From assembly GCA_965637545.1 (NCBI GenBank), contig OZ281496.1:28830001-28894000 (forward strand): a stretch of 64,000 nt of DNA, in the 5' to 3' direction. Positions 31,837 to 56,769 of the stretch are shown here, piece after piece. This DNA comes from Phallusia mammillata (taxonomy: Eukaryota). Every line of letters starts with the position of its first letter. The stretch's first letter is position 1. Below the pieces are notes generated by a model, which worked only from the letters and a program-made list of their open reading frames with translations, had not been told where the DNA came from and made no database searches. The position numbers and the translations under genes are program-made.

Positions 31837-34800
31837 ATGAAGTATACGCTACAAGACGAAGGGACCGATTTTACTCAGCATGGAGAGTACAGAAGGGGTA
31901 GCTCGTACACGAATGATGCCTATATCCACGAGACAGGTAAGCAATCTCCTATGTCACTCTGTTGTGTGCACTGCCAGCAAGCATTTTGCCATACTTAATT
32001 TAAATTTGCTATGTTGCTGTAATGCTGCATCGATAGAAAGGTTGGTTTCTGCTCAACATACTGACGCTGCAGTGGTTTTCCAAGTCGGTCTGTTGCATAT
32101 TGTATAAAATAGACTAAAATCTAAAGTAATGGTATAAGGCGTTGTTGCGTATGCACACAATTAGTCAACGTGACTAATACGTTTACAACCCAGGATTTGT
32201 CAATAAACGCCAGAATATGTTGGTATATGCTACTTACAAGCTGACTTATGTTGAGATGCCTTTAGGATCCAGCTACACTTTATTGCCATATTGCTTAACA
32301 AAGATAACACCATTCTACTAAAATTGTTTTCTATAAGTTATGTATTATAAGTTTCCTAAAAATAGCCTCTACGTGTTTTTCGTATTTAAACAGAGTTTAA
32401 CGATGTCTACCGGTCGTCACAATCTCCTGATTTCGGCATCAAGAATGACAAAGGGTAAGTGTTATGCCTATCATATGAAGCATATCGATTCGACACGAGC
32501 ACATGGCTGACATTAGGGTTTAAACAAAATGCACGACACTTGGTAATTATGCACAGGAAAGAGGACAGCAATGGCCTAAGCGCGCACGCTTTTTCACACA
32601 CGTATGTGTAGCTCGGTAACTTTACTATTTAAAGCTGTTATATGTTGTTTGCAGTAGATCTGAGTCAATTTGTTCAAGCCCGTATAAAATGATAACAGCT
32701 AAGGTTTATTGATAGGAAGCTAAAGTTTTTGGGTAGTAAAGTCGCGTAACGAGCGCTGTAAACTTATTTAAAATCTGGATGGCTATGTGATGGAACTGTT
32801 TTCCTGTTTGTGCTGCAAAGTTGTGGCTTCTGTGTGTCTGACCTTTAGCCTAGAGAAGCGTAGTGGTGACGACATCGTTTCACACAGCGGTAAGCGGTTT
32901 GGACTTTCAGGATTGTTACATAGTGTGTATTGGCATGACGCATAAAAATCGAACTGCTATGTAAATATTGGTGAGGAATAGGTGTGTGTTCGTTCAATGT
33001 ATAGGATAATACAAACTGGCTAGCTATTGCAGACATAAATACACGTTTTTTAGTGAGGTAAATAAAAAAAGCATACTCGATGATAGTAAGCTGCACAAAG
33101 TGCACATTGTTACCACCTATAAGGTCTCATCCGTGCAGCTGATGACAAGATGTACGCCGTATTGGCTAGTGTAGCCAGCCAATTGATGAGGCCATATAAG
33201 TCTAAACAGTATGTGCACATTCTGAAGCATATCATCCATTGGTTTGATGATTTTACATTTAATGATCACTTTAGAATATTCGAAATGCTTCTAGTATCCT
33301 TAAATATATTTCCGCAATATACTGTAGGACACCAATATAATGTATAACAAATTAGTTTAGTGCTGGGTTTCATATTTTGCTGCAGTTGGTGAAAATTTCA
33401 TTTTATATGCAGGCAGAAGTCACTGGAGGAAGTAATGGCGAAGCAGCGGAAACTCAAAGATTCCAAGTAGGTATAAAGGTCAAATGATTGAAAGCATGAC
33501 TTGGCCGCCTCACATCAAAATTTCACCAAAAGATACTGTCAAATAGCATCTGTTTTACCGCCTCAGTAGCAAAATGTGGAAAACCCCTGTACCAAGGAGC
33601 TCTGTAATGTCTCTATAGCAATAAGTGGTTTTATGTGACAACACATACCAACTTTGCGTGACAGGCAGTTTGCTTGCTTTTCCGGATAAGCTTTTGAATG
33701 ACAGATTACTTTATTTGTAAAAACCTTAGATTTAAAACAATTTGTTTGAAAGCACAACTATGATAATTTGTAGTTGTAAGTGAGGCCTGGCGTTTGAGCT
33801 CGGGTTCTGGTTTGAGTTAGCGTAAAACGGGATTGATTTGAATCTAACGTTACACTAGGTCACATTTCAATCGATTAATTTTTGTCCTGGTTCTTGTTCT
33901 ATTTAATAAAAATTTAAATCGATCTCGTTTTGGCTTGTACTTTCTGGGTTCTGGCTTTGGCCTAAACAGTGAGTTTCTGGCATTGACTGCTATTAAGCCA
34001 AAAACCCACAAATAGTCATTTTCTTGCAGACATAAATCCTTGCTATTACCATTCGTGCCCGTCGAACCGCAGTTTTCGACATTTTTTTGGCAGTTTTTTT
34101 AACCATGTGTTTGGTAAAGACACCTTCTAAGCCTTGTGTTATAAAGCAAGCGGTATTGGACCAGAATCTATTTGGCCTCACCTAAAATTTTCGGCTGCCT
34201 ATGCCACCTGGTTCCAGCTCCCTTTTGTGGTCAGGTTCCAACTCCGTTTGACTTACTTTATGTGGTGCTAAACTTTACAGGAAAGGTAAGAAGAAAAAGA
34301 AGAAAAGCAAGAAGAAGAAAAAGAAGGAAGAGCGAATGAAAATAGAGCAAGTTCCCTTCTTCAAGTTGGTAAGCTGCACAACGATATGTCGTACTATAGA
34401 AAAAGTCCAAGTCATATTTTATTCCAAAGGTCGTCTTTATGAAAATAAACTCATATATTTCTCACAGTGTAGGGTACATAAAAACGGTCTTAATAAAAAA
34501 AACACTTGTGTTTGTTTCATTAAACTCAGCATTATCTGTTGTTCGCTATGTTGTAGCGTTTCCGCAACGCGATTTAGACCAGAAGGTCAAGGTCTTGATG
34601 CATTCTTGTTTCACAATCACATTTCATATTTTTATCAAACCAATTCAAGTACTTTAGGGAGCTGAATGAAATGACCCGCGGGACGTAGTTTAGCGACCCC
34701 TGGACTAGCGTATAAATATTCCGTTTCTTGTTTTAGTTCACATATGCCGGAAGTACAGATGTTCTTCTTATGGTTGTCGGAACTTTTGGAGCAATGGTCC

Positions 34801-37800
34801 ATGGAGCTGCATTCCCTTTCATGATGACTGGTAATCTTTCAAAGGTTTAGCTAATGTTTGGAGTTGCAAAATGACCCCAAGTAACCTATTTGACCTATGG
34901 TCAGCAACCGACCATAGGTTATCACAGCGTCATTTGTTGACTCTAACAGTTAACAAGTTTATAGAGCTATTCTAACAGTTAACGTTTGTGTAGCCTTTCA
35001 CGTGTTTAAAATTTTGGCGTTTTTTAAGCCTTATAAACAGAGTTGCCATCGACGTGAACCCCAAAATAAGGACAACCGAAAAAAAAAAGTTTTTATACTG
35101 AACAAAACAAAGGTTTTTGTTCAATTATACTCATTTATATGAGCTATGATAACATTTTCTATAACATGGCCCTTTAAAATAAGGACAAATCATAGAAATA
35201 AGATCGGTATGGGCATCCCTGATTATAAGGCATTACCTAATTGCAAGCTGATCATTAATAAACTGTTGTTTAGACTTAATGCGAAAGGCTTGCTTTTGAT
35301 ACTGCATTTCACATTTAGAATGTTTGCCTTTTTACACTTACAACAAAGTTATGTTAGCATTGAACCGTCCAAACAGACATCAAAATTTTTGCGTGTGCAG
35401 TTTTCGGGCAGATGATCGACACTTTCATCAACTATAGCGTTTGCACTCAAGAAACGAACGGAACATGTACAGAGGCAGAAATCAATGCAACTTATGAGGC
35501 GCAGGGAATCGATCCGGCCAACCTATCTGACGCTGAGAGACTTGAGTAAGACTCGAACCCTTTTTCGTGTCTCAGTCTAAGTTTGTTTAAAAAAATCCGG
35601 CTTAGTTATAAATTCTTGTTTAATTTTTTTTAAATAGAATTCTCCTAATTTCCTAATTGTTCTGTATTCCTAATCCATGGAACGGTTTTAACCACTTATA
35701 CTGTATGGGAATATTCGTTGCAGGTTAAGATCCCGTTAGCTTTTTTTTACTTTAGAAAAAAAAAACAATTATCGTTGCTTGTTAAATAAAAAACCTTACA
35801 AATTTACAAAGTTACAAATTGCATTGGCATGATCAAATTTGTCAGGAGTGCTTAGCTTTTAAGGTTTTATTAATGTGAACATAAATTCTACAGGATGATA
35901 CAAATTTTTCTGATTGTTTACTCGTTTAGTAACCAATCCCATTGGATTCGAGCCTTCCTAGCACTAAACATTTGATCCAAAGAAAAAATATTACAGGCGC
36001 ATTGAAAATCATAGTTAACCAATTGGATTTGTTTGCAGACCGATTGATGTTGAAGGTGAACTTGAAGTTTTCAGCTACTACTACGTGTTTATTGCTTGCG
36101 TCGTGATAATATGTGGATACTTGCAGGTAAAAAGCAAATATTTACCACCAACATACAGTTCCTATAGTTTGTAAGCATACCAGATATCTGCAATGTTATA
36201 TGTGTTTTAATCTGGACTAGTTTAAACGCTTGTCTTAAACACGTCTTATATATCAATCAGATGCAACCTGTGGCTTAAATGCGTTCAAGAATTAGTCTTT
36301 TGAGTCGTAGATTGAGTTTTATTCTAGTTAAATTTAACACTTACGTCAATCAACTTAAATACAATCTATGGCAATAATAAACCTGATAATTGTCTAATGG
36401 AGTCGTAAATTTTGCAACAATTAACCTGGAACATATCAACATAGGCTCCTGAAATATTTTACTGACTAGCTGCATTGATTAATATTTTTTACAACCCGCC
36501 CTTAGGTTGGAAACTGAGCTCTCGCCTCAACGAGACAGACTGTGCCAGAGTAAAACTCAAATATCATTGGGTTTTGGGTTATAACCCCATGAAAATAATG
36601 ACTTACCAAATAATTTGAGAGGTTTTAAAATTATTTATTGACTTGTTGCGATTTGTTGATTATAATATTTTTACAAACTCGCATTTTTAGGTTGGAAACT
36701 GGGTGCTTGCCTCAACGAGACAGACTCGTAAAATTCGGGAGCTTTTCTTTCGTTCGATTATGAAGCAAGAAATCGGTTGGTTTGACGTTCACCACATGGG
36801 AGAGTTAAACACGAGAATGAACGAGTACGTAAAACCTGTTTAAACTTTCGGATGTGCTTAAGTCAATCCCAAAAACAAAAAGTCGTTGGTTCGAATCTCG
36901 TAAGAATTAATAACTTACCAAATACTTTAGGACGTTTTTGCAGGTTTAAATCTTGTAGACGCGGTCGATTCAAACCTTTTTAGACGCGGTCGATTTTATC
37001 AATAGATAACGAAGGTAAATACAAAACGAAAGGCCAAACGACCAGAAACGCTGCAGTGCTTTTATAATTTAAAGAGGTTTCCCGTGAAAAATAAAACACA
37101 CTCGTAATAACGTTTTAAATCATATATAAAGTTGAACTCAGCTATGAACATCAAATGATTTGAGACTTTGTTTAGGGTTCCAAAAAATCTTAAACTGGTG
37201 GATTATATTAAACAATCAGTTACATTTAACCATGACAAACTAGTGTTTTGCATTTTTATCCCTTTAAAGATTGTGATATTTTTTTTTTTCAGTGACGTGA
37301 ACAAGATCAGTGACGCAATAGCGGACAAGTTCAGTGTATTCATTCAGCGAATTACAACTTTTGTTGGTGGAATTGTTGTCGGTTTTATTAACGGTTGGCA
37401 ACTGACCTTAGTGATTATGGCCATCAGTCCATTGCTCGGAATTGGTGCTGCTCTCATGGGACGGGTATGTGTAGTTGTTTTTATTTGCGTTTTTTGCGTT
37501 TTAGCTGATTTGTTTTTTAAAGGCATTGGTTTCTATAAATTTGTTGAACTGCTGTATATTTTGTTTTATTTTGCAATGCTTTGTTTTGTTGCAAACTGTG
37601 CTTTACTTAACTAAACGTATTTCAACACGTAGAGTTAAGAATTGAATAGGTTTTGTTTATCTCAGTCACTTGCTTGAATTTTCATTTTTTACATTCTTTG
37701 AACCTGACATATCATGTTTTTTATAGTTTGTTGCGAACATGACGAGTAAGGAACTAAAAGCTTACGCAGCGGCTGGTGGAGTTGCTGAAGAGGTTCTGTC

Positions 37801-40800
37801 GTCAATTAGAACTGTTGCGGCGTTTGGAGGGGAACACCGAGAAGTAGAAAGGTAAAGTCAAAATGAAACAACCAAACTGACTGCAGAAAACAACAATGCA
37901 TCAGCTTGTTTCTCCCTCAGTTCGACTTAACGTTCTCCCACCATTTTATACATAATATATTCTAAGTATTGGTTGTTGTATGAGACCAGTATTATGAGCT
38001 TATGTTTGTCTCATGTCAAGGTAATCGTTTTTCTGCACAATAACTTCAGGTCCAACGAACAGTCTCTAATAGTTGAATAAGCAATGTGGTGATGCTATTT
38101 AAGCACTTAAAAGAAATGTTTGGACATACTATCAAGGGGTTTGGGTAAAAACAAAACGACAAACATTGGTATTTTATGTGTCCAATTACGTTGTCCACTT
38201 TAATCTCCAGTTTAGCACCGCTACTTCAGTTTTGACAGAACAGTCACACACACAGCATATCTACAATAGATCTTACCAAAGTTCACTGTACTTAAAAAAC
38301 GGAACTGCATTTTTAGATATGGGGTGAAACTGGAAGCAGCTGAGAAGCAAGGAATCAAGAAAGGAATGACGCAGGGATTTTTTACCGGCTACATGTGGTG
38401 CTTGATCTTCCTCAGCTATGCGCTTGCATTCTGGTACGGCTCCTCACTGGTGCACGACCCCAATATTGACTTCTCTCCTGGACGTCTGATGACTGTAAGT
38501 TCCCCCAAAAAGATTTTTTTGTTTTTTCCACCTAAAACCGTAACATCTTGACGTCTTGCTGAGCACTATTCTGCGGCTACTCCTTACACAAATATTGTAT
38601 ACAGGTGTTCTTTGCGGTATTGGTTGGTGCCATCAACCTTGGTCAGGCCGCCCCGAATCTGGAAGCTTTCTCAGTGGGAAGAAGCGCCGCCGCACTCGTG
38701 TTTCAGATAATAGAACGGGTCAGTTCATCTTATTCCTGTGCTCATATATTTTTTGTCAATGTTTGTAAAAATGCGTTGTGAAAAAACATATATTTTGGGA
38801 CGAAAACTAAACTAATTTTGGATAACAATAGATTTTAACTGCATTACAACGGATTTAAATTGTGTTTTATATAATCGTACAACATAATTTCGTATTATTT
38901 ATTTGTTTTTGAAATTTGTTTCGTTAGGAATCAAAAATTGATCCCTTCTCTACGTCAGGTCACGTGCTTGAACACGTGGTTGGAGACATCGAGTTCCATG
39001 ACGTCGGTTTCTCGTACCCGAGTCGAGACGACCAACAGGTCAGAACCTTATGATGTTTTGTTTAGTTTCCATTGCTAGTAAATGAAACTAAAGAGAAAGT
39101 TTATGTGTTAATTTTTTGATAGGAAATCATGTATTAGTGCTGTGGTTTCGTTTGCTTCAGTTAAAATACTTTCTTACACTTTTTGTAAATACTAGACGGT
39201 TTTACAGAGATTTTGTAATATGCAATTTTAAGAATTTAACTAAAGATTGCTGTTTTCTAATTGAAAAAAGTATATTTCGACTTAAGCAGAAACGTTAGTA
39301 ACTACAAACGGAAACTCAGTTTTTAGATGCACGTTCCTAGATTAGAGAAATATTTCCTAACTTACATCTAGTGCTCACTGTTTTTTTTCAAACTGGATTC
39401 AAACTTCTTTTAGTAGCTCATAGTACGCCAGGTCTATTAAAGGCGTGTACCGAATTCTTTTAGTAGATTTACATGTAGAACCATATTGGATCAAAGCAAA
39501 TTCAAACTTTATACTATATCAACCTTTGCACACAGCAGTAACATCTTGTTCCCCTTTCAGATCTTAGAAGACCTGAGAATAACTTTTAAAGCTGGTGAAA
39601 CAACAGCAGTGGTTGGACCAAGTGGAATGGGAAAGAGTACTATTTTGCAGTTAGCCCAGAGGTTCTATGACCCCGACAAGGGCGTGGTATGTACAAAGTT
39701 GTGTTACTCTAATCACTAACACGTTTTATGGCTTATCTAAACATGTGTTTTGCGATTGATAGTAAAAAGATTAATATGACCCCTGATACTGACACTGGGG
39801 TCTTCTTTCAAAAAGTTTGCAAGAGTTGTTTCTTTGATATCTCGCGGTATGTGTAATTTAGCACTAAACATGTGTTTAATATGTTGGTTGTAGGTCCAAA
39901 GGGTAACCTCGTTTTGGTATATGATAGATGTGGTTGTTGTGTTAGAGATATCACTATGTTTGGACTAGTCGTTTTGCCAATACTGGCTCTATAAGACGAA
40001 TATTTCAATAACCTTGATTTAGAAATATAGTTAACATAGGCAAACTTGTAAAATTTATCGTATTTTTTAAGTATTATGTTCAAACACAGTAACAATCCAT
40101 TCACTATATGCTAGTTACTCTCGTTATTGTTAGGTATTCTCGTTATTTGTTGTTATTTCATTACAACTTATTTTCCTTGTTTTTGTATGTGGTTTTTGCA
40201 ATAATTTTGCATCGCTTTTATCCTAAACATCACGCTTGCAAAACCGCCAACATGGGTTTAAGAATCGAGATACAAAGTAGTATTCTTGGTTGCACTTTAA
40301 CTTACCTTGATTGTTTACAACGACTTTCAATGGGACTTTTCAACAGAGACGATAAACCGATAGATTAGTTTTTTTTCATTTATTCTGTACACACTAATTT
40401 TTCACGTTTCCCTTTAAGCTTTATAGATTGCAATATTATTCTTGGTTACTCTTCAACTCTCCTTGATGGTAAAACAACATATCGTTAAGGTGACCTTGGA
40501 CGGACATGACTTGCGAACGTTGAACACGCAATGGCTTAGGCAGCTGATTGGGGTCGTGCAGCAGGAACCCAGTTTGTTCGCGACCAGTATTGAGGAGAAT
40601 ATTAAATTCGGACGGGATGGCGTGTCTGATGCCGATGTGATCCAAGCAGCAAAGGCAGCAAACGCTTACAACTTTATCATGGATCTTCCTGATGTAAGCT
40701 ATAAGTGTGTTTTACTTGTATTTTTAATATGCTGTCACTGCAGGGTTGTAAAGTAATGTTGATTTGAAATGCGGTCAGACCTACAAAATTCACTCTTAGC

Positions 40801-43800
40801 GGTCTTACCAAAAATCTTATTGCTTACCGTATTTTAGGAACCGCTGCTTTTATCTAATTTAAGGCCAGGCTACGTAGCAACGCCTTCCTAGTAGTTTTGC
40901 TTTATCCCCCCCCAATGCACTCTTCAGGACTAATGCTGCAATTCCCCGTAATGCACCCAATTTTTTGGGGACATGTTTTGTGACTGTTATTGTGCACCTA
41001 TGTTGAAAAAAATACCGTCAAGAACACACAAAGGATTTTTTTTGAAAAATTACTTTGTTGCTTGGCAGAAATTCAAGACGGACGTTGGCACGGGTGGAGG
41101 TCATCTCAGTGGAGGACAGAAGCAGAGGATTGCTATAGCGAGAGCTTTACTCAGAAACCCAAAGATATTGTTGCTTGATCAAGCTTGCTCGGCGCTCGAT
41201 ATGACAAGTGAAGCAATGGTGCTGCATGAATTGGATAAGGTGAGACAACTTATTAACGGTTTTTGAATGTTGTTTAACAATCGTATAATAGATTTTTTTT
41301 GAGAAGTATAGCTGCATGGTAAGTTAGTTTTTATGAGTGCAGTGAAAATAGCTATACTGCAAGGTGTGAATCGATGCCTGGCTGGTTGAGGCAACACGCA
41401 TAGCGCTTAACCCTTGGTCGTTTTCTTATTTCGCTAACTTTTGTGGTTCAAAACGGCTAATGTTTTTTTTTAAAAAACTCTATTTGTCGTGCTCAACAAA
41501 AACACTGGGATCATAATGCAGCACATATCGAATTTGTGCTCGTGACCTTCACCGTTTTCGCGTCCTATAGCACTAAAGTTAGACTTTATGCTACGGGCTT
41601 TACCACTGAGGAAAATACACTCAACTCAACCTAAAAAACCTACTCAACTCAACTAAACACTAAAACACTTACCCTAACACAACTTAAGACTTAACTTAAA
41701 AAAACGTACTTAACAGTGAACTTACTTAAAAAACTAACTATGATATGCAGGTCAGACGGGGTCGTACCACCGTCATCGTCGCCCACAGACTGTCAACCAT
41801 CCGTGACGCTGACGTCATAGTGGGAATCGAACACGGGAAGGCGGTAGAGCGCGGAACCCACGATGAGTTGATGAAGAATAACGGGGTTTATTTCACACTG
41901 GTCACCCTGCAGGTAATAAAGTGAAGTAGAACCTGTAAAATATTACTTGTTTGTTAAATTCTATTGCAGACAACTATTAAATCATGCGTAACTATTTATA
42001 ATTCTCATGATAAATTTATTGTGAAATTATTTTTTAACCTATTTGTTTATTAATTATCTCAATAAACAAACTTACAGAACATGCTGAAATTATTCGAGTA
42101 TATGTGTCTTTAAAATGTAACGCAGATTCATGATCTTGTAAAATATAATAACTTTGTTTTTGTGTTTTTTTTTGCACCAGACCACTAAAGCGAAGAAAAA
42201 AGGAGGAGAGGAAGGTGGTTCATCCGATGAGGGAAGCGACAGTGAAAATCGAGATGAGAAAGGTTGTGATTATTCTACTAATTTTTTTTAATGTAGTGTA
42301 GGCAAAACTCGTAATGTTGTTTCTTGTTTTCTTAGGCGAATTCCTTGAAAACGGACCAGAAGTCGCTCTTGAACACGTCACAGATTTTGCTCACAGCCAT
42401 CGGAGGAGCTTAAGGTATTTATACCTTATATAAAGCATTGATCTTGCAGAAGGCGTTTCGTAAACATATGACGCTTGGCATTAATTTTGAAACTCTTGGG
42501 GCGTAAAAAATTTCGGCTATTATGAATAACCGGTTTAAATTCGAGTTCACTACTTAAGTTATAAATGAAATGCAAGTTTTCTTCTGGAAAACCGGTACAA
42601 TATGTTGGTTAAATAGAGTCAAATGCAATAAGCATGAACGACAGTATTAACATTTAGAGATATAGTGCGAATAACAATTACTTCTTTTAGACGGAGTTTA
42701 AGGAAACGGGCCACCTCACAGATTTCAGGAACGGACATGACTCCAATGGGAATAACGACTCCCAATCCACCCAAGAAGTTCAAACGAAAAAAATCCGACA
42801 GCGATTCCGACTCGAGCGACAGTGATGTAAGTTTTCCGATGCTATAGTAGCTATGGTAAAGTTAGTTACATTTTGATGGGACCTGGTATATACTTTAGTT
42901 GGTCAAAAAAGCTGAAATGATTTACCAAGTGTTGCTGCTTAGCCCAAAAACAAGATATATGACAAATAGTAGGTTTGTTCTAAACTACCCAAAATTGTTG
43001 TAAACACAAACCAACAAATCCATGCTGAATTAACCAAAGAATTTTACAAAAAATATAAAACGATTAAGAGAACTTTTACATATTTACTAACGCATATCGA
43101 CCATCTACAAACATCCGGCAACTTTATATTTGATCAAGCAAATCGGTACTGAGATCCCATGTACTTAGGATTCAAGCAGTGATGAGGAAGAAGAAGAGGA
43201 AATCGAACCTGCTGCTCTCAGTCGAATCATGAAGCTCAACGCCACCGAGTGGCCGTATATCTTGGGAGGAACCATAGGATCGGCAGTCAACGGAGCGATT
43301 CAACCAGTCTTCGCAATTCTCTTCTCTGGGTTACTTGGGGTAGGTTTTCTGCTCTGCCAAGTTAAAGTTTGTTTTTAAAGAAAGATGTCTGACGTCATTA
43401 GCTTTGTCAATTTAAATCTGAAGGTCAAAAACGAATGTCTGACTTCACACCTTATAGTCTTTGTCAAGTTTAAATTTGACGTCACTTAGGGATGTTTTGA
43501 CGTCATGGTCTCTACCTAGTTTAAACCTACGTCATGGAGAAATCTGACGTCATAGTGTATGTTTACGTCATCTTGAGCATACCAATAACAGTTCATTTAG
43601 TGATAGGTGCATTGTGTGTGTAAGTTATTTAGTAGATGGGAAAGCTATAATAAAGGTATTTATTATTGTAAATGTATATCTCAGGTCTTCTCTCTTCCCA
43701 CCATAGAGGAGCAACAGAAGGGAGTCAACTTTTACGCTCTTCTATTCGTCGGAATTGCCATCATTTCGTTTTTCACCTATTTCCTACAGGCAAGCAAAAC

Positions 43801-46800
43801 AAACTTCGATTTTACTTAAACGTTGGCAAACTTGTGGTAATTAACTGACAGCTGATTACTTGTCCAGTGTGTTAACCACATTAAATTTGATCAAATTTGG
43901 TAAGGAAATGCTCTTATCACTTTGTAGGTTTAACTTTGTGTATGACTTGACATAAAAAACTTGAAAAATGTGACAATTATTCCTTTGTTGAATCCTGTAC
44001 TAAGGCCTTTTTCTGACTTAATGCTTTCAAGGAACTGTCTAACGTTGCAAATACATACATATAAACGAGTATTGATATCCTAGCAGTTTTATTATAAACA
44101 ACCGACGTTTTCGATACAAGACGCCTTAATCAAGATAACGGCATAACGCAATGTTATTATACAACAACAAAAGCATCGGTAACACACAAAAACTACGATT
44201 ACAAGCTTGTGAGGCTACAAAGTTACATCAACAGAGTGATAAAACTTCGACTAATAAACGAAAATTTTCTGCAGAACTACATGTTTGCCAAGTCCGGTGA
44301 GATTCTGACTCGTCGTGTGAGGAAGATGGGATTTGAAGCGATGTTGAGACAGGACATTGGTTGGTATGACGACCATAGGAACAATCCCGGTGCTCTGTCT
44401 GCTCGATTGGCTACTGATGCTGCGATGGTTAAAGGGGTAAGAGTCGTGTGAAAAATTTTTCTGGGTTTTCTGGGTTGTATAAAAGGCTTGGAAACTGAAA
44501 CGAAGTATCTCAGACGGATGTAGTTCCATGTCTATACTGTCTTAATTATTGCTTTGTTTAGTTTTAATAAATAAAGAACACTTTTATTGAATGACTATTT
44601 TTACTCCGATTGCCATAAATCTAGATCATCCTTTGGACACTACTTACAAACTTATAGGTAGTTCAAATAAAAATACAAACGCTTAAATGGTTATTTTCTT
44701 TTGAGTTCATTAAAGTCAAACATTTTTACTTTAGGCAACTGGTGGACAAATCGGGATCATCGTTTCAGCAATGGCCAGTATTGGAAGCGCTCTTATTATC
44801 GCCTTCTACTTCGGTTGGATGTTAGCGTTTGTGGTGGTCGCGTTCCTCCCACTTATTGTGATGTCAGGATTGATCCAAGCTCGTTTAATGACTGGGAGCG
44901 CCAGAAGAGATAAGGAATCACTAGAGGAAGCTTCAAAGGTACAATTTTTGTTTCTGTTGTTGTTTAATAATAGTATAAGAACGTTTTGTTGTTTCTGAAC
45001 AATAAAGTCCATGTTCGACGAGAGTCTAAGTTTACACAGACCCTTATGTGCAAAGTGTATGGATAGAAAAAATTGTTTTTTTTCTGAGCAAGTTATTGCA
45101 ACACAAAAGTATATGTGCAGCGAAAATCGAATCGGTTTGCCACTTTAAATTGTTTTTTAAAAATATTGCTAGTGTTTTCTTTCCGAGTATTAGGACTTTT
45201 ACCTTGCTTAACTCTACAAAAGTTGGAATAATGCAATAAATACCCAATATTTGGATTCTTGAACCACAAATGCGACAATTGTTGTGTACTATCCTTGTGT
45301 TATATAGTTATTGCATACAGAACAAAATGGGCAAATTATTAGAACGCTATCACCCTTCGATTAACTATAATAACAGGAGAACGCATTTGTGTAACCCAAA
45401 CAGCAGATTACAATGTGTTATTTTTATCCTTTTTCTTTAGGTTGTATCAGAGGCAATCGAAAGTATTCGGACCGTTGCGTCGCTGAACAAGGAGTTGTAT
45501 TTCACTGAACAATATAACACTGTTCTGGAAGGACCTTACAAGTAAGCTTAGGCCTGGTTAAAAAGTGATTAAAATTTAATTTTTTCTACGGTTGTTGAAA
45601 GGATCTGCAGAGGATTTAAAGTAAAACGCATGCTGAAGAAGCATGGTTATTATTTTCTGAAATGCATATTGTATTGTCGTTGTAATCAATAACACTTTCA
45701 TGATGGATCATCATACGTTTCTTATGCAGCGTATACTGTATTGCAGTGGTTCCTAACCTTTCTCGACGAGTTGCTCACTTAACAATTTAAAACATTTTTA
45801 TTCCTTTCTAATATACTACATAGTAGACCGTACGAAGACTATTTAAACTTGGGTCTTTTATCAACTTCACAGGTTATATTCCCACAGCTAAAGTATCTAT
45901 TTACAAACCACATGTAAAAATTAAAGTAAATTCCTCCCTGGTTGGGAACCACTGCTGTATTGTGTCCTGCCATACAACGAATCACTCACGAACTAGCACT
46001 GTTACTTTTGTTGCTTTAAATGTGCTTATTAAGTCATATGTGTTAAGGGAGGGAAAATACAACGCCATGGTGTATGGAATTACATTCGGGATAGCAAACT
46101 CCATCATATTTTTCGCATACGCTGCCTCCTTCCGATTTGGTGGGTATCTGGTCGCTATAGGAGAGATGGAATTTCAATACGTCTTCCGGTAAGAAAGAAA
46201 CTTTTTTAAATGACCTCTATAGGACGTCGAAACGTCGTAATAAAAAAATACATTTGCCAGAGGAGCTCTACATAAACTTTATACTGTGCCTGGCAGCAAT
46301 AGCTTATTTAAACTTTTCAAACGTTTATAGAACCAAAGCTTTGCACAGTTTTGAGTTAACAAACAATATTGAAATTGTTTTAAGATAAATAAGGTAAAGT
46401 TATATGCATGGTCCATATTGTTCATCACTACTAACGATTTAACGGCAATGACAATCCCGTTGAGAGTTGTAAGTCGGGTTTGGGTCTGAGTTTAATTAAA
46501 ATAGGTTTTATTCAGGCCTGACTTAACACTAGACCTCAATTGTCACACAATTTCACCTACTTCCGGGCCTAATTTGAGCTTGTCTTTTAAATCGGGTTTC
46601 GCTCAGGTTTTAGACTTGTACTTTCGGGTTCATGTTCCAATTTTAAACCAGTTTAAGTCTGATACCGTTGCTACAGTTGATCTCAATCTATTTGTCGATT
46701 TAAAAACATGTGTATTTGCTGAGAGGGATAAGTTAAAACAATACAACCGTCGTGTAAATCTAACTTTTTTATGTTTTTCGCAGAGTGTTTTCTGCCATAG

Positions 46801-49800
46801 TGTTTGGTGGTACAGCATTAGGAAGAGCTTCGAACTATGCCCCGGATTATGCCAAAGCCAAAACCTCAGCAGCTCGCATCTTTAAACTTCTGGATCGAAT
46901 CCCACCAATTGATTCTTACAGCCCGGATGGAGACCAATGGGTGAGTCTGCCGAACTTATTAAATACAAATTTACGTGAATAAAATACTTTATGTAAAAAC
47001 CATAGTTTGCATTATGACTCTATGACAATGAGTAAAAAAGCCCTGGGATAGACAGTGAAAAACGTTTTCAACATTGATTTGATCTTAAATGGGTTTAAAC
47101 ATGATATGGTTTAATCGAAAAGTAAGGAAATCATGTTTGTAATGCGGGACTTGTGTGTTAAAGACACGCGTAAATAAATTGTAGTGCATTTCTACTAACA
47201 ATGCTCCTGAGGTCGTTTTATCATTTGCTATATGTATATCTAAACTACATGTTCTATAATAAGTATTGTTTCTTTGCAGAGCAACTTCTGCGGGGACATC
47301 GTGTTCAAAGACTGCCTTTTCACTTACCCGACGCGTCCCGACATAACAGTTCTAAGAGGCTTGAACGTCTCCATCAAACCTGGTCAGACTTTGGCGCTGG
47401 TGGGACAGAGCGGGTGCGGTAAAAGTACCAGCGTTCAGCTACTGGAGCGGTTTTACGATCCGGACGAAGGTCAAGTGGTAAGACCAATTGTGATTTTTTT
47501 TTAGTTTTCTTTAGTATTGTATAAAACATCAAGCCAATAAATTATCCCACTTTATCTGTGCGATACCTTAACTCGGCATAAACCACAGAGGAAACTGTCT
47601 CACAATAGACAAGCAACTGCTGGGGGAACCAAAGTGGCTCAGTGTCACGGTATTAATGCAAAAGTATGGAGCCAATAAATGATAAGAAGACAGTGCACAC
47701 TGTTTCGACCTATAAGGTCTCTTATATTCGCTCGATGCTTCTACAATGATACTATGACACTGAATCGACTTTACTTTGGTTCCCAAGCAGTTACTTGGTC
47801 ACTATTTTTTATTTGTTTAGCATTTATTCAGAGACGAAGTGTTGTGTATTTAATTGTTATATATTTTGTTGGTTTAAGGCAGTTTGCAAGTTGCCTATAA
47901 TGAAATGAAACTTCACAGGGTTGTATATTGGCGTATGTTTTATTTTAAACCTTTGTTATTTGTTCAGTTTGTGGACGGTCATGATACCAAGCAAACCAAC
48001 GTCTCATTTCTACGAAGCAAAATCGGAATCGTATCGCAGGAACCGGTTCTTTTTGGTGGATCGGTGCGCGATAATATCGTGTATGGCGATAATTCCCGTA
48101 TCGTTCCAGAGGAAGACGTAGAGAGAGCAGCAAAGCTCGCCAACATGCATGAGTTCATTCTTGCTTTGAAAGATGTAAGTCACGCTGCAATTTTACAAAA
48201 AATATTTCTTTAATTGAGTTCCTACTGGTGCTATTGAGTATGTCGGAGTAACCAAAAGATTACTCACGTATTCATTTGTTACCAATTGAAATGTCTGTGT
48301 TGTCTGCTTGATTTATCAAATTTACAAAGATATTCTTTCCTTTTAATATTGCCCTTGAGGAAAATCTGGTTCAGCTTTATGGCATAAGCTTTGCACAATA
48401 CAATGTTCCATGTCTAAGCGTTCGTCGTTTACGACAAATCTGAAATTGCAACGACTTGATTCTTTTGTAACAAGTAATAAGAACACCGGTTATTCTTATG
48501 AATAAAACTGGACGTTTTTTGGATTTTTGTTTATATACAATATAACAGCATGAAGAGAGAAATATTCTATCAAACGTTTTAATCTCAGGGTTATGAGACG
48601 AGTGTTGGTGACAAAGGCGACCAGTTATCAAGAGGGCAGAAGCAGAGGGTTGCTATAGCAAGAGCTCTCGTAAGAAATCCGAGGATTCTTCTTCTTGATG
48701 AAGCTACTTCCGCTCTTGACACAGGTAATATTGCAACAAAAACAAATTCGTATTATTTCGATGTTTGTATTTCTTTGAAAATGCGCAATGCTGCAAACTT
48801 TCCATATCTAAGTTGCAATGTATATTGAATTATTGTGTACAGCCGTTAACGCGCTAAAATGATTTGTAGTTAGGGTCGTTTTTTGGCCCTAAAATATATG
48901 GCCGGTCCACAATTTTGGGGCACTTTACATATACCTTGTATCCTAACTGTCCAAATGCTACACTAGTAATGCCGCTAAACCAGTATGTTAAATAAGCTTT
49001 CTAATCTGTCTTATCTTGTTGGTTTGGGGTCGGGTTCATGCTAAAGATATAAGACCGATTTGCAACACTGTACACTAGTAGGCTATAACCATTGAAACAG
49101 TGTGTTAGTTGTGTTTACCAATCTAGTTAACATTCTAACTTTGTACCCTAATTATCCAGATGGTTCACTAGTATTACTGCTAAACCAGTGTGTTAACTCA
49201 GTTTTCTAATCTTGTTGGCTTAAAGTCGGGATTTTGCTAAAGATACAGGGACTGTACACTAGTATAGACATTAAAACAGTGTGTTAGTTCTGCTTTCCAA
49301 TCTAGTTAACATTAAAATCTTGTATAATATTGTTTAGAGAGTGAGCAGATTGTGCAGGAAGCCTTGGACCGGGCGAGAGAGGGACGTACTTGTGTCGTCA
49401 TCGCACACAGACTTTCAACAATCCGCAACGCTGACAAAATCGCCGTGATATCACAAGGTAATATAATACTCACTCAGGGGTTCTTAACCTGGCGTACACC
49501 AAAGCAGGGAGTTTGAAATAGGGTTTCAACACAAAGGCTCTTTTGGCTTTTAGGGAAAGTTTTAGTATGGATAATATACACATTATTGAATAATATACAC
49601 CGAACCCCATTGGTTATGTAAAAAGCAGTAAAATTAAATTGAAGGATTCCTGTCAGTTTATACTTTTTTTTTGACAGTGTTAAGGGGTTCTAGCACCGAA
49701 ATGATTAAAAACCACTTTACGTTAAATGACCTTTTACCGACCCTACTAAAATATAGATTGTGCCTTCAATGCGTGTATGATGAAGTGCTTTTGTTGTTTT

Positions 49801-50247
49801 TCCAGTGGTAGCTCAATGTAGAGCTCCTATAGTATAGTGTTAGGTTAAGTAATACATTTTGTCGCGTATTATTAGTTTTTGTTTAAAATGCAAATACATT
49901 TGAGAGCTGTTAGATACATTGTAATGTCAAAACGTATGCCTCCATTGGCTTTTGTTCCTTAACCTAAATAGCGGAAAAGTCAAGTTGGCCCATGAGGCAT
50001 GTCTTGGGACTGTATTGTTTGTCGAAACAGTTGAATTTTGTTCTAATTCCAGACTGCAGCAGGTTGTTATCAACTGACACACTTGTCAAATCGTCTCTGT
50101 CACTTTGAAATGTTTAAGAATTGTGAATTATAACTTATGCATTTTGCTTGTTTAGGCCAAGTGATTGAACAAGGAACCCACGAGGAACTTATGGATTTGG
50201 AAGCAGCTTATTACAAGCTTATCACTACCAACGCTTCCCTAAGTTGA
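31837..50247 (+). CDS. ABCB11: Full-length ABCB transporter, ABCB11/BSEP-like, about 32 coding exons
   Basis: TMD-NBD-TMD-NBD order is continuous across exons. NBD1: [26 protein letters not shown]2: [33 protein letters not shown]-type rather than P-gp-type diagnostics (recalled sequences): LSRG signature, non-E Walker B in NBD1, [38 protein letters not shown]-terminus AYYKLITT. The three N-terminal exons (31837-31936, 32394-32455, 33417-33466) are inferred from frame continuity and are less certain. Confidence 0.82.
36506..36549 (+). pseudogene. Degenerate duplicate of the start of the next ABCB exon (36691-36824), with an in-frame TGA
   Basis: TTAG|GTTGGAAACTGAGCTCTCGCCTCAACGAGACAGACT versus the true TTAG|GTTGGAAACTGGGTGCTTGCCTCAACGAGACAGACT; TGG changed to TGA at 36515-36517; flanking intron pieces are also duplicated. 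Confidence 0.8.
43390..43570. promoter_or_regulatory. Cluster of CRE-like TGACGTCA palindromes in an ABCB intron
   Basis: Perfect TGACGTCA at 43390, 43477, 43498 and 43545, plus TACGTCA at ~43528 and ~43564, within a decayed tandem repeat. Function not shown. Confidence 0.4.
45744..45954. mobile_element. hAT-type MITE (211 bp) in an ABCB intron
   Basis: Terminal inverted repeats CAGTGGTTCCTAACC / GGTTGGGAACCACTG; 8-bp target-site duplication CTGTATTG (45736-45743, 45955-45962). Confidence 0.9.
48955..49325. repeat. ~190-bp tandem duplication in an ABCB intron
   Basis: GCTAAACCAGT.TGTTAA...TCTTGTTGG...GCTAAAGATA...ACTGTACACTAGTA...AAACAGTGTGTTAGTT...CCAATCTAGTTAACATT is present twice. Confidence 0.75.
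49475..49717. mobile_element. Decayed hAT-type MITE (same terminal-repeat family as 23115); further partial ends at 14486 and 25728
   Basis: Left end CAGGGGTTCTTAACC; degenerate right end ATTAAAAACCACTT; target-site duplication not recognisable. Confidence 0.5.
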
Positions 50248-51785: not shown

Positions 51786-54416
51786 ATGATGTTGTTCGTA
51801 AGCTGTTTGAAAATCTGCTTCACATTGGTGACCATCTTACGAATTGTCGAAGCACTGGAAGGTAACTGCTCTACATATTTTGTGGTCAAACAATTTCAAA
51901 TTCATGAGTGTAATAAAATTTAACAAAACTAAACCGAAGCTGTCTTATATTAGCCACATGCGACACAAAACTGTCGGATTTGAAACACTCTATCACAAAA
52001 GTAATTTGTCCCGGCGGCTGTTGGATGCAACATTCAGATTTATGTGGGACTGACGACTACGCCAGAGGTCCTCTGTGTCTTGCTGCGATGCACACTGGAC
52101 TGATTGACAGTAAGTCGATTTTAACTTGTAAATTAGTACATGTTTCGCGCATATTGCCACTAACAGGCATTTGTTGGCGTTTAACAAGTTTAATGGCTGT
52201 CCAACTTTGAAGTACGATTGGTTCGCGTGGTACTCCATCCAATAACAAATGACGTTTAATAAACCAAACATCTCAAAGCAATCAATAAATGCAATAATGC
52301 TCATCAATAAATACAATAATGCTTTTTCGTGTTCAAACTGAAAGTTTTTGTCAAAAAGATTTTTTTTATTCTGAATAGCCAAGCACACCTGATGTTTGAC
52401 ACAGTTTATAGAAGCAACTGTTGTAGATAACGTTGTTGCAATTATCATGTTTAGAAGAGGGAGGATATTTTGAGGTGTTTCAAAGCAATCCATTACCGAA
52501 GTACACAGGCACGACAAGATACGGCGTGACCAGCGAATCATGCGGTTCTGCTATATTCACTTACTCATTTCAAAGTATGACGCGGTCGTTTATTGCTCAG
52601 CCAATCTGAAAAACTATAACTCACTTCTTATGTGTAGTGAAATGCAGCACAAAGGGAAATTCTGAATTTTCAGTGACTGATGTTGATTGTCCTTCCGGTT
52701 GTCGTCCTAACTACGTGTGTGGGACAAATTTCTACAACAGCAATTCGTCTGTATGTGCAGCTGCTATGCACGCTGGGATTTTGAAAGGTCTGGTTCATTT
52801 GGCTTGCCTATAATAACACAACATCTAGAAAAATGCTGTTTTTTTGCAGAAAACGGAGGAGCGGTTACATTTTATTCTGATGAGAAACAAACATCTTATG
52901 TTGGTTCAACAAAAAACGGCGTTTCCAGTCAGTCATGCAACAATTTCCTAAGATCCTTTTCATTTACCAGTAAGTGTGTTAACCTGGCCTAATTTGCTTG
53001 TTCTTTTAGTATAACTTTTCAGGAAACAACGATTGTTTTCGGAATTGTCAAAACGAAGGTAAATGCTTGTCAGGAATTAATGCTGAGTTTTGCTCTTGTG
53101 CGAGTGGAACAGAGGGAGATGATTGTAGAACTGGTGAGAGAAACCTTACATCGAGCCTAGGTTGAAATATACAGCACAGCACACTTGTTACCTACGTATT
53201 ACTGTTTTAGACATCAACGAATGTACACGTGGAACACACAACTGTCATCAACACGCAACTTGTACCAACACGTTGGGTAGTTTCCAATGTTCTTGCAACG
53301 CAAACTACACAGGAAATGGAACTCAGTGTGGTAAGCTAAATTGCAAAACATAAAAGTTTGTTTATAACGTTAAAATCCGCACCACATTCCCTGTTGTGTG
53401 AATTGTTAGGACTTACAAGTTTGACAATTTTCAGAGCCCAACTTTTGCTTTGCTAACGTCGATCTCTGCAAAAATAACGGAATTTGCTTGGACACAAAAA
53501 CAGCATACAACTGCTCTTGTGATGTTTTTCATCAAGGAAAGCATTGTGAGCAAGGTATTTCGAAAGATTTGTGAGAATCTAAAATCCAGATGATTTTTTA
53601 GTAATTATAATATTTGTTTTAGAGATTGACCACATAATTATGACCACAGCAAGGAATTGGGCAAACGCAAGAAAATATTGCCAGTCAATTGGTGGAGATT
53701 TGGCGACCTGGGGAATGAGAAACGCAACTGTTCGCAAGTATGTATTACAGGTTTAGCTTTAAGCATTCGGACGTGGGCTCAATATAAGACTTTTTACCAA
53801 TAATGTTTTCTTTTAAACATTTAAAACCATTTGCCAATCCTTCAACACTTTTTGTATGAGATCCATTTTTTAGTTGAAAAATGGCAGAAAATAGATGCTT
53901 TGTCGTAACCTTTACTTAGTGTTGTATAATTTAAAACTCCTCAACCTGAATGAATCAACACTACTGTCCATTGAGCCTCATCAACAACTCAGATAAATCA
54001 AAATTTAGTTGCCACGAAATGTGTTTAATTGTATGCCAAGCACCATATCGTTGATTTTGTTTGTTGCTGTAAGTGTAACCTTATTATGACCACAAGCAAT
54101 TTGCATTGTGGCTCTGACAAACAAGTAGGCTTATAAGAAACCACTATATTCAAGCTCGATCATTGAAAATGTGCTGCGCCCCGGTCCACCATCAGGTTAC
54201 TGGATTGGCATGTCTGACCTCGACCAAGAAGGAGTTTGGAAATATGTTGATGGCGTTGCTGTTACAACCAAAAATACCGATTTTTCATCCGGCCAACCTG
54301 ACGACTACGGTTCAGCACAAGATTGTGCATGGTTGTATCTAAAATTTAACTACAAGATGGACGATGGTTGGTGTACACGATATGAACTCGCCATCTGTGA
54401 GAGAATCTTGAACTAG
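51786..54416 (+). CDS. Secreted LCCL-LCCL-EGF-cbEGF-EGF-C-type lectin, copy A (10 exons, 449 aa)
   Basis: Exons 51786-51861, 51954-52109, 52455-52574, 52638-52787, 52850-52969, 53023-53133, 53211-53330, 53435-53554, 53623-53737, 54155-54416 give an open 1350-nt frame. Signal peptide MMLFVSCLKICFTLVTILRIVEA; LCCL motifs CPGGC..CGT..Y..LCLAAMHTG..GG and CPSGC..VCGT..Y..SSVCAAAMHAG..GG..NGVSS; DINEC calcium-binding EGF; lectin domain with WIG, QPD and MDD. No TM segment. Confidence 0.9.
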
Positions 54417-55164
54417 TAGCAGCAAACCATGCATTTGTTTTGAACATTTTATTTGTTAGCCTCTACCAAATATCATTTTGTGTAAAGTTGCTGAAGTGAC
54501 ATAAAAAAAATTAACACATATATTTGTAACTGCATTTTAATCGGTGTTTTGTGCTTTTGCTTTTTTTTGTATAATCATCGATGATCAATATGTGCAAGTA
54601 AAATTTTCTACATAGTTTTTTTCCTGTGCACTGTTTTGATTGGCTAGTGTTGCGGTCAAAAACTTCGGGAGAAAATACAGACTATGTTCCGAAGACAAAC
54701 GCGTTTCGTGTTTCGGGTAATGGATTTTGGGCAAAATATCCACAAAAAATGAGGTACCAAGTAGTGAATGCTGCAGTGTTTCTCCTTGTTTAATTTTTGA
54801 TTTTATTCCCAGCAGTTTGGAACATCTTGATTTGCCATGGCAGTATAAAGCGAAGCTATTAAAACAGAATATTCACTGTCAAAGAGTTATCTAAAAACAG
54901 ATCAGCGGCGTCACAAGGTACTCACATTACATGTGTGTATAGTTATAGTGCATGTGTATGTAGTGCCTCGTAGCACTGTTAAAGCGAACTTCTGGTTGTC
55001 ATTATTGCTCTTTTTAAGAAAATTCTGGTTTGTCATTCTCATTATTTTTAAAAAAATTATCAACTCTTCAATTTTTTTGCTAGCGTTTCAAAACTTTAAA
55101 ATATCTTCAGTCTTTCTATTTGCACCATTGACTTGCAAACCATCTTGCTGTGTCAATAATGCTT

Positions 55165-55330
55165 ACATTGAAGGCGCCACACCGAATCAGCCGGTCACCA
55201 GGCGTTCACCACCATATGGCAATGCGTAGGCTAAAAAAATCTAGCCCTCGGTGGGATTCGAACCCATGACAGGAGTTTTTCCGGGACTTGCGTCATACCA
55301 ACTGAGCGACGCAGGCTCAGTGGAGAATCC
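55165..55330 (-). mobile_element. tRNA-derived SINE; head at 55243-55316
   Basis: Minus strand GCCTGCGTCGCTCAGTTGGTATGACGC...GGGTTCGAATCCCACCGAGGGC has A-box, B-box and a partial acceptor stem, but no valid anticodon arm. It is followed by a body shared with copies at ~55405-55590, ~61812-62010 and ~22258-22355. Confidence 0.75.
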
Positions 55331-56769
55331 GCCGAAAGTCGAATCACAAGCACCGTTGCCTGCCTCGTATGCTGCACATGTCAACTTTGTAATATGGGAT
55401 CGCAAGATTGACCAGTATCGGTTAATATGAACATAAATTCATAACTGGGACCAGCCCTGAAGCGTCAATATGACACTCACATATACCAATCACAGTACGC
55501 CAGGCCGATTGAAGGCGTTATACCGAATCAGCCGGTCACCAAGCATTCACCACCATATGGCAAGGCTAGCCTGCGGTGGGTTTGGGTACCTATTGTTAAT
55601 ATTCGTCATTTTTATGTTACTTTTACCTAGCTGCTCTTAAAAGTGTTGGTCATGAAAACACTGATCAGATGCTTGGAAGCACAATTAATTACATGCAGCC
55701 AAACCGGCAACCTTTGACCCAATTGGCCTTCCAGCAGACTTTTTTCTTACGTTTTAGCTGCAGGCAGGAGATCTGCCAAAGGTGCTCACTCAGTTCCAAC
55801 TTACATTCATTTGTTCCGCAGTGACCCAGAGAGCTGTAGTAACCTCTTTAGTGTGTTGAAAGGTTATGTTTGCTGATGTTTTTAGATAGTTCGTTTTTAT
55901 CTACCCAGTAAGCTGCTATAACTACTTATCTGTACATACTTAATCTACCTTCGGGCGTTGTAGTCCTAATGTAACCCTGGATATTATGTTTCTACATACG
56001 CTGCAACTTACTGTTGTGATAAGGTTCTGTAGTCTGATGAAATGATGTATGTAATGTTTCTGTTCCCTGCAAGCTGTTCTGTTTGGATATGGAAACGGAT
56101 GTTATTTAAAGCAATCTAAAACTAAAAGTAAGAAATGTAAAATAAAATTGTACTTAAAAGTAGGTTAGAAACTATATCCTTGGTATTTACAACTAAATGG
56201 AATAGGCTACTTGTATTTATAAAACGTTAATGGAGTCGTGTAAACTAAATAATTTGGTGTTATTTAGGATATTGATTTCATAAACAATACTGAGTCGATT
56301 GACTGGTTAACACGTCGTTGTTTTGTTTTTGTAACATTTTTCAAGCAGTAGATTTCTTTTTTGCGGTTAATCGCCTTAGCTTACACCCAAATTTATTTTC
56401 AGTTTATGGGTTTAAATATAAGTAATGTGCACAAACAGACATTTTTTCATACTTACAAATTAGATAAAAAGTTTTTTGGTGCAAAGTGCATAGCCTGTTT
56501 GGTAGCTTGTCTTTGAGTATAGCGTTTTTAATATACATTACGAATTGTGGGTTCGAATTGCTTGTGTTTTTTTATGCACTTGATGGCGCTGCAAATTGAT
56601 TTAAAAGTCGCGGTTGAAGCTTGAAATAAGAAACACGGGTTAATTATATGGCAAAAAATAGTGGGATTGAATACATGGAGTCTGCATTTCACCTAAATAT
56701 AATAAACCTTTAGAACTCTAGTTACGTATGTTAGCAGGACACGAATATGCCAATTTAACGCTCGGGTCA

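Follow-up and report, generated by a model that had tools for sequence, protein, structure and literature searches.

In human BSEP (ABCB11, the pump that exports bile salts), ATP stays in composite ATP site 1 when ADP-vanadate occupies site 2, and the exchange E1244Q in site 2 abolishes both ATPase activity and transport (PMC10638440). Here we describe the corresponding gene of the ascidian Phallusia mammillata, which lies in a 64,000-nucleotide stretch of contig OZ281496.1 (assembly GCA_965637545.1, positions 28,830,001 to 28,894,000; hereafter the window, numbered from its first letter). We consider it very probable that vertebrate ABCB11 has its one orthologue of this genome at this locus, with a degenerate site 1 that would hold ATP unhydrolysed and a site 2 that would drive transport.

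The functional meaning of such a site has been studied in the related transporter ABCB1. Goda et al. (2020, PMC7544095) describe that loss of the site-1 Glu occludes ATP and arrests the cycle, that E-to-Q at this Walker B position inactivates ABCB1, and that in the quadruple mutant S474E/E556M/G1178R/Q1180E the other three ABCB11 residues weaken the binding of ATP in site 1 and thereby restore transport with one active site. In the simulations given there, the G1178R side chain bridges both Q-loops. In that paper the Met counts as fully conserved among ABCB11 proteins, and the signature position is given as "glutamate or a glutamine". Ren et al. (2015, PMC4458048) state that ABCB11 occurs "from sea squirt to human", and NCBI and UniProt already name the Styela and Clavelina proteins BSEP or BSEP-like; the orthology of sea-squirt ABCB11 is itself previously published and not new. 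What we add concerns the residues of site 1, and in particular a natural Gln in place of the catalytic Glu.

Composite ATP sites of the Phallusia pump

A preliminary description of the window, made from its letters alone, had pointed to three motifs, and these were found exactly at their coordinates and codons when read and translated in the exon frames of one stop-free 31-exon model (Table 1). Positions 40547-40570 translate to I-G-V-V-Q-Q-E-P, and 41165-41182 to I-L-L-L-D-Q, followed by ACSALD. The LSRGQ signature of NBD2 (the second nucleotide-binding domain) faces the Walker A/B site of NBD1, and so shares composite site 1 with the D-Q pair. Composite site 2 is canonical throughout, with LSGGQ in NBD1 and both ILLLD-E and the Q-loop IGIVSQEP in NBD2, which bears out the proposal that the odd residues belong to a single site. 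NBD1 retains the Walker A Lys, A-loop Tyr, Q-loop Gln, H-loop His and D-loop, and site 1 should therefore still bind ATP.

Two hallmarks of the ABCB11 group are present, namely an NBD1 Walker B motif that lacks the catalytic Glu (D-Q) and Arg for the second Gly of the NBD2 signature (LSRGx). Two others are replaced. Ahead of the NBD1 Q-loop Gln, where human ABCB11 has E502, Gln is found in Phallusia, Clavelina and Ciona and Ser in Styela; the Walker B Met (M584) is Gln in tunicates, in the hagfish Myxine and in the Logan protein P0414. Glu ahead of the Q-loop is a vertebrate-level feature that is not decisive for orthology, and the Walker B Met defines only jawed-vertebrate ABCB11. A non-Glu NBD1 Walker B together with LSRGQ in NBD2 occurred in three of 91 full-length ABCB cluster representatives: the Phallusia protein, the Styela BSEP-like protein and a frog BSEP-like protein. 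The signature and Walker B exons retrieved from the other ABCB genes of the Phallusia genome all carry [LM]SGGQ and DEATSALD. The combination at site 1 is not due to chance.

We propose that site 2, formed by the NBD2 Walker A/B motifs and the NBD1 signature, presumably hydrolyses ATP. Site 1, with D-Q and LSRGQ, would bind ATP but have no catalytic base; by analogy with human BSEP it probably holds ATP without turnover while site 2 drives transport. By analogy with the ABCB1 mutants, we infer that the signature Arg may let the pump escape the ATP-locked arrest seen with a bare E-to-Q exchange. The four positions concerned are those addressed in human ABCB1 by E556Q/E556M and the quadruple mutant (Goda et al. 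2020), and the pairing of Arg with a dead Walker B motif is natural in the tunicate protein; the engineered set is E/M/R/E, whereas the natural one is Q/Q/R/Q, a combination outside that paper's tests.

The host has no liver and tunicates are not known to make bile salts, and on that basis the substrate of the Phallusia pump probably differs from that of BSEP. The sulfated sterols put forward in the preliminary description are a speculative candidate. A role that must differ from that of BSEP also lends something to another mechanism for the same orthologous gene, in which site 1 performs slow regulatory hydrolysis, or the protein is a nucleotide-gated regulator or channel-like, as CFTR and SUR are among ABCC proteins. 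A regulatory function is conceivable for the linker, which is long, acidic and Ser-rich, and Walker B E-to-Q mutants of ABC (ATP-binding cassette) exporters keep residual hydrolysis and tight nucleotide binding (PMC7756269). However, the transmembrane domains (TMDs) are 53-58% identical to those of vertebrate BSEP and all of site 2 is canonical, which is the pattern of a working exporter, and no sequence feature points to a channel or receptor role. We regard this alternative as unlikely, and keep to a pump that would be driven by site 2.

Orthology to vertebrate ABCB11

Tunicates are the sister group of vertebrates. An exhaustive search with the Q-loop exon across protein representatives led to full-length ABCB proteins, among which the nearest to the model by BLASTP were two named "bile salt export pump-like", one from a frog (57%) and one from Styela clava (48%). 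A word search with the Styela protein retrieved Clavelina lepadiformis and Ciona savignyi, followed by more than 100 vertebrate BSEP entries (from hagfish, sharks, skate, sturgeon, teleosts, frogs and birds) and only one ABCB4. Over 1314 aa, the Phallusia model shares 80% of its residues with the Clavelina 'Bile salt export pump'; its identity is 74-80% to the C. savignyi proteins and 56-58% to vertebrate BSEP. In the reciprocal search, a Clavelina ABCB1-like protein retrieved ABCB1-like paralogues from tunicates together with vertebrate ABCB1/4/5, and no BSEP. A single NBD1 exon compared with the PDB gave no separation (118.2 bits for ABCB1, 116.8 bits for ABCB11).

In a maximum-likelihood (ML) tree of 69 proteins (LG+G4), five tunicate BSEP-like rows (support by the SH-like approximate likelihood ratio test, SH-aLRT, 99) and 17 vertebrate ABCB11 rows (100) are sister groups, and the clade that joins them (100) is separate from vertebrate ABCB1/4/5 (98) and from 17 tunicate ABCB1-like proteins (100). 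A second ML tree of 40 rows was computed under LG+C20+F+G4 after removal of five diagnostic columns, as a guard against circularity. By ultrafast bootstrap (UFBoot) and SH-aLRT, it gave 100/100 for the joint clade, 99/99 for its tunicate part and 100/100 for its vertebrate part. Approximately unbiased (AU) tests rejected both a single clade of all tunicate ABCB rows, as expected under convergence (log-likelihood difference, dlnL, 119.6, p 7.9e-16), and a single clade of all vertebrate rows, as expected if ABCB1 and ABCB11 had split within vertebrates (dlnL 143.5, p 1.1e-4). The trees contain neither a named lamprey nor mammalian ABCB11, and amphioxus and ambulacrarians are thinly sampled in them. 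The preliminary description had supposed an ABCB11 lineage that predates vertebrates, in an invertebrate host, and had named an ML phylogeny as the check. The joint clade and the rejection of both AU alternatives uphold the former, with no placement within the ABCB1-like clades; the host is confirmed by exons of three other ABCB loci that are 98-100% identical to the UniProt P. mammillata proteins P0303, P0331 and P0332.

Convergence, by which a tunicate-specific ABCB1-like duplicate would have degenerated its first ATP site independently and would merely resemble ABCB11, draws on the many lineage-specific ABCB1-like duplicates in tunicates, on the repeated origin of degenerate sites in ABC exporters (PMC7756269) and on the Walker B residue, which is Gln in tunicates and Met in jawed vertebrates. 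Against this stand the 100/100 clade recovered without the diagnostic columns, the 119.6 lnL that it costs to force the tunicate ABCB rows together (AU p 7.9e-16), a similarity to BSEP that extends beyond the ATP site through the TMDs and the C-terminus, and the presence of the same Gln in hagfish ABCB11. We consider convergence highly improbable.

Compared with vertebrate ABCB11 (human BSEP, PDB 6LR0, 8PM6 and others), the Phallusia protein falls in the orthologous clade (100/100), has the order TMD1-NBD1-TMD2-NBD2 with 56-58% full-length identity, and shares the degenerate state of the same composite site (no Walker B Glu in NBD1, LSRGx in NBD2), a canonical site 2 and a BSEP-like C-terminus (AYYKL.TT). 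It differs in having Walker B Gln rather than Met, pre-Q-loop Gln rather than Glu, and a linker that is far more acidic and Ser-rich. The tunicate entries Clavelina P0171, C. savignyi H2YAP5, H2YAP8, H2YAQ1 and H2YAQ3 and Styela XP_039250451 are direct orthologues (48-80% identity) that share the Walker B Gln and LSRGQ; their BSEP(-like) annotations are automatic, and Styela differs by retaining Ser ahead of the Q-loop. We found no paper that discusses the ATP site of these entries. The tunicate ABCB1-like paralogues, among them those of Phallusia at C7:20.1 Mb and C1:32.9 Mb, share the superfamily, the architecture and the genome, but group in a clade of their own (100/100); their identity per domain is only 40-63%, and both of their ATP sites are canonical.

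Many C. savignyi and C. intestinalis proteins that UniProt names 'Bile salt export pump' appeared among the ABCB1-like matches (for example H2ZPW3, H2ZPT2, H2ZPB3 and H2ZR88; P0302-P0353). Four such entries were included in the tree (three from C. savignyi, one from C. intestinalis), and they fall in the tunicate ABCB1-like clade with canonical ATP sites. The true C. savignyi ABCB11 orthologues, the four listed above, are labelled 'Uncharacterized protein' in UniProt.

The jawed-vertebrate ABCB11 rows form two well-supported groups in both trees, one with the frog 'BSEP-like' protein, one Xenopus laevis copy, sturgeon and some teleosts, the other with sharks, the other Xenopus copy, birds and other teleosts; both are E/M/R/Q at the site. 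This suggests an old ABCB11 duplication.

Site 1 residues across the ABCB11 lineage

A census by alignment and regular expression over 208 full-length matches recorded the pre-Q-loop residue, the Walker B residue, the signature Gly position and the signature Gln position, in this order. Phallusia, Clavelina and C. savignyi are Q/Q/R/Q and Styela is S/Q/R/Q. Among the jawed vertebrates, 196 sequences are E/M/R/Q and two are E/M/R/E, with Walker B D-M in all 198. Myxine glutinosa ABCB11 and P0414, which is sister to it (SH-aLRT 99), are E/Q/R/E: their Walker B motif reads ILLLD-Q-ATSALD, they share the Gln at the catalytic position and the Arg of the NBD2 signature with the tunicate proteins, and they differ from them in a pre-Q-loop Glu, as in other vertebrates, and in the signature LSRGE. 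P0414 turned up in a search for lamprey ABCB11 with the hagfish protein as query, in which no named lamprey was among the best 120 matches. A relative from an ENA assembly (L022/L026) has the same exon structure with IGIVQQEP, ILLLDQATSALD and LSRGQ.

These states qualify the idea of an intermediate between ABCB1 and vertebrate ABCB11, as the site had been described at first. The Walker B Gln and the pre-Q-loop Gln do differ from the jawed-vertebrate residues, but LSRGQ is the normal state of non-mammalian ABCB11 (196/198), and this position is therefore not intermediate. Similarly, the Gln is well read as a natural variant, but it is not a tunicate oddity, since hagfish ABCB11 shares it. Because Gln occurs in both tunicate and hagfish ABCB11, the statement in PMC7544095 that the Met is fully conserved needs qualifying.

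Within the tunicates, NBD1 of Phallusia is 82-85% identical to that of Clavelina and Ciona, on a par with NBD2 (84-86%), which argues against decay. The four named species with Gln presumably span three orders of the NCBI taxonomy. The view that a natural E-to-Q exchange is tolerated here gains from the retention of Gln in these species and in the ENA assembly, from the equal conservation of the two NBDs, and from a gene that is spliced and transcribed. The Walker B Gln is under constraint, and the signature Arg is universal in the ABCB11 lineage. The state of the site is inherited and did not arise as a recent accident.

Because tunicates retain the Gln throughout and a cyclostome has it too, it is probably the ancestral replacement of the catalytic Glu in the ABCB11 lineage, with Met as a jawed-vertebrate change. 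The most parsimonious course would place E to Q and G to R ahead of the tunicate-vertebrate split and Q to M on the jawed-vertebrate stem, a direction that we infer from the present-day states. If Gln is ancestral, Q to M would be a jawed-vertebrate refinement and S/Q to E a vertebrate one. We lean, by a little, towards a single origin of the one-active-site design (E to Q with G to R) that preceded both bile salts and the separation of tunicates from vertebrates, with the original Gln kept in ascidians and cyclostomes.

Three marine-metagenome contigs (L023, L024 and L025, one of them labelled TARA) carry an ABCB11-like Q-loop exon that is 84% identical and reads IGVVQQEP. Their introns are very short (about 100-150 bp), and the contigs stop just short of the Walker B residue. 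They probably come from another tunicate sampled in plankton.

The Gln codon in DNA and transcripts

Contigs from sequencing runs were compared with the window over 40400-46399, in a difference table that omits 12 weaker differences. The CAA codon at 41180-41182 lies within DNA contigs X2 and X4, from two independent studies, with no difference listed at the codon; the sole listed difference near IGVVQQEP is a synonymous G>A at 40576 in X2 (Leu). Two spliced contigs span the codon with 0 other letters, one in X7 (record 17, 41126-41237 joined to 41749-41901) and one in X9 (record 22, 41173-41237 joined to 41749-41886). The DNA contigs and the spliced contigs all carry CAA, and the Gln codon is thus present in DNA and in processed transcripts. 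The preliminary description had asked for this codon to be confirmed in reads, and it is unchanged in contigs from four studies (two of DNA, two spliced and RNA-like).

Spliced contigs from two studies cover six GT-AG junctions (41239/41751, 42262/42336, 42414/42691, 42826/43169, 43339/43685 and 45541/46048), and the RNA-like runs X9 and X25 carry portions of the 3' half of the gene. The gene is intact, spliced and transcribed. The LSRGQ motif is identical in the Clavelina, Ciona savignyi, Styela and ENA-assembly orthologues, and a sequencing error there is implausible given this conservation. An early-decay pseudogene, or codons that are assembly or sequencing errors, is the least probable alternative, since the inactivation of ABCB1 by E-to-Q (PMC7544095) and the lack of gene words in most RNA-like runs of the species are outweighed by 31 exons free of stops and frameshifts and correctly spliced in transcript contigs, by CAA in four studies, and by the same motifs in four named tunicates and the ENA assembly with NBD1 as conserved as NBD2.

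Gene model and neighbouring sequence

Exons were chained from open frames, canonical GT-AG splice sites and frame continuity. The initial chain had 29 exons from 34339 to 50247, stop-free and encoding 1314 aa; two upstream exons and the start ATG at 31837 were then located through the N-terminus of the Clavelina orthologue by tblastn followed by a junction search, in which the exon 2 donor pairs with an acceptor at 34281. In its final form the model comprises 31 exons that encode 1390 aa free of internal stops, and its span contains no N. Exon 1 was placed tentatively by homology, and an extra small exon before 33413 is possible. By exon-wise Pfam matches, the single polypeptide has two PF00664 and two PF00005 regions in the order TMD-NBD-TMD-NBD, as in a full ABCB transporter, and the spliced model can be aligned with full ABCB proteins from one end to the other. 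Exons 4-12 encode a long first extracellular loop with N-x-T sites in TMD1 and the NBD1 A-loop FSYPSR. In the 1390-aa numbering, Walker A of NBD1 is at 492-500, the site residues are Gln539, Asp620-Gln621, Arg1290 and Gln1292, the H-loop is at 650-656, and the NBD2 Glu is Glu1313.

Table 1 Features of the ABCB11 orthologue in the window (64,000 nucleotides; positions counted from its first letter).
Feature	Coordinates	Strand	Evidence or remark
ABCB11 (BSEP) orthologue, whole coding span	31837..50247	+	31 exons, TMD1-NBD1-linker-TMD2-NBD2
Exon 1 (tentative), start ATG	31837..31952	+	tblastn of Clavelina N-terminus, junction search; donor uncertain
Exon 2 (tentative)	33413..33466	+	80% match to Clavelina residues 60-74; donor CAA/GTAGGT
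Exon 3, N-terminal Lys-rich segment	34281..34368	+	junction search
Exons 4-12, TMD1 then NBD1 start	34737..39038	+	PF00664 exon matches, junction search, exon order as in L022
Exons 4-8	34737-34830, 35401-35545, 36039-36126, 36691-36824, 37293-37464	+	
Exons 9-12	37727-37851, 38317-38494, 38605-38718, 38928-39038	+	
Exon 13, NBD1 Walker A, canonical	39561..39686	+	exon model
Exon 14, NBD1 Q-loop exon, IGVVQQEP	40490..40693	+	sequence; covered by X2 and X4 DNA contigs
Gln539 (CAG), residue preceding the NBD1 Q-loop Gln	40559..40561	+	corresponds to ABCB1 Ser474, human ABCB11 Glu502
Exon 15, NBD1 LSGGQ, Walker B ILLLD, D-loop SALD	41069..41239	+	junction 41239/41751 in X7 and X9
NBD1 signature LSGGQ, canonical	41105..41119	+	sequence
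Gln621 (CAA), replaces catalytic Walker B Glu of NBD1	41180..41182	+	sequence, DNA contigs, spliced contigs
Exon 16, NBD1 H-loop VAHRLST, NBD1 end (VYFTLVTLQ)	41751..41912	+	exon model, spliced contigs
Exons 17-20, linker and TMD2 start	42181-42262, 42336-42414, 42691-42826, 43169-43339	+	four junctions in X7 or X9
Exons 21-27, TMD2 then NBD2 A-loop and Walker A (GQSGCGKST)	43685..47477	+	Pfam matches, spliced contigs, exon model
Exons 21-24	43685-43789 (GC donor), 44275-44436, 44735-44938, 45441-45541	+	
Exons 25-27	46048-46188, 46784-46940, 47280-47477	+	
Exon 28, NBD2 Q-loop IGIVSQEP, canonical	47968..48174	+	exon model
Exon 29, NBD2 signature and Walker B	48589..48724	+	98% identity to relative L026
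NBD2 signature LSRGQ, Arg1290 (AGA 48631-48633) replaces second Gly	48625..48639	+	sequence; orthologue conservation
Glu1313 (GAA), intact catalytic Glu of NBD2 Walker B ILLLD-E	48700..48702	+	sequence
Exons 30-31, NBD2 H-loop and BSEP-like C-terminus	49338-49457, 50156-50247 (including stop)	+	exon model

The linker (exons 17-20, 42181-43339) is unusually acidic and Ser-rich, with Lys-rich stretches ahead of the acidic part, and is poorly conserved even within tunicates (13-66% identity). It may be a phosphorylation or regulatory segment. The intron at 43790-44274 is of the GC-AG type, with a GC donor instead of GT; an RNA-like X9 contig jumps from 43789 to letters that match 44275 onward, which supports this intron. 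The intronic intervals 45800-46000 and 46200-46400 reach a word depth in the thousands in DNA runs, compared with about 24 and 7 elsewhere, and show many loose ends; they are high-copy interspersed repeats within ABCB11 introns. Downstream of the pump, 51800-61200 contains genes with open frames of LCCL-like, EGF-like and C-type-lectin-like character (an example lies at about 54200). Elsewhere in the genome, an intronless open frame of 1386 aa (C1:35204531-35208689; L001:1032-5189) was considered as an ABCB gene and set aside, its best PDB matches being ABCC5 (E = 0, 1200 bits); it is an intronless ABCC5-type gene, an ABCC5 orthologue, in an otherwise intron-rich genome.

Discussion

Several points weigh against the reading of the Phallusia gene as an ABCB11 pump with one active site and an ancestral Gln. 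Transport activity, ATP occlusion and asymmetric hydrolysis are deduced solely from the residues. A Walker B Gln in ABCB1 still permits ATP to be hydrolysed very slowly and nucleotide to be trapped tightly. Goda et al. (PMC7544095) tested the full quadruple set only, and relief by Arg alone, without Glu502 and Met584, is a conjecture. Exons 1 and 2 are homology guesses, and read-level support is confined to 40400-46399, with LSRGQ (48625-48639) outside this interval. Expression support is thin, consisting of a few low-depth contigs in runs guessed to be RNA, and words of the gene are missing from the majority of the species' RNA-like runs. The ancestral-state case depends on one named cyclostome, one further sequence (P0414) and parsimony. 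That the lineage is no older than tunicates and vertebrates is not established, as amphioxus, hemichordates and echinoderms were not exhaustively covered.

We found no paper on a Gln-type Walker B motif in tunicate or hagfish ABCB11, or on the order of the four substitutions, in an incomplete coverage of the literature with subscription journals mostly outside it. The Gln state and its sharing with cyclostomes are apparently undescribed. A full ABCB transporter with a natural and conserved E-to-Q exchange opens the evolution and the logic of the degenerate BSEP site to direct test.

In Ciona savignyi, several of the proteins that UniProt calls "Bile salt export pump" are ABCB1-like paralogues. 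The degenerate ATP site of BSEP has medical relevance through cholestasis and serves as a model for ABC pumps that run on one active site. The orthologues described here date this asymmetric site to before vertebrates and before bile-salt physiology, and suggest an order of substitution in which G to R and E to Q came first, then S to E, and then Q to M. Gln is the classic "hydrolysis-dead, ATP-trapping" substitution, and in the ascidian and hagfish orthologues it is paired with the signature Arg; the tunicate orthologues are thus natural proteins in which to test which residue relieves the ATP-locked arrest. If Gln is indeed ancestral, the ascidian and cyclostome proteins would be full ABCB transporters that function in nature with the same exchange by which ABC pumps are inactivated and trapped in laboratory work.

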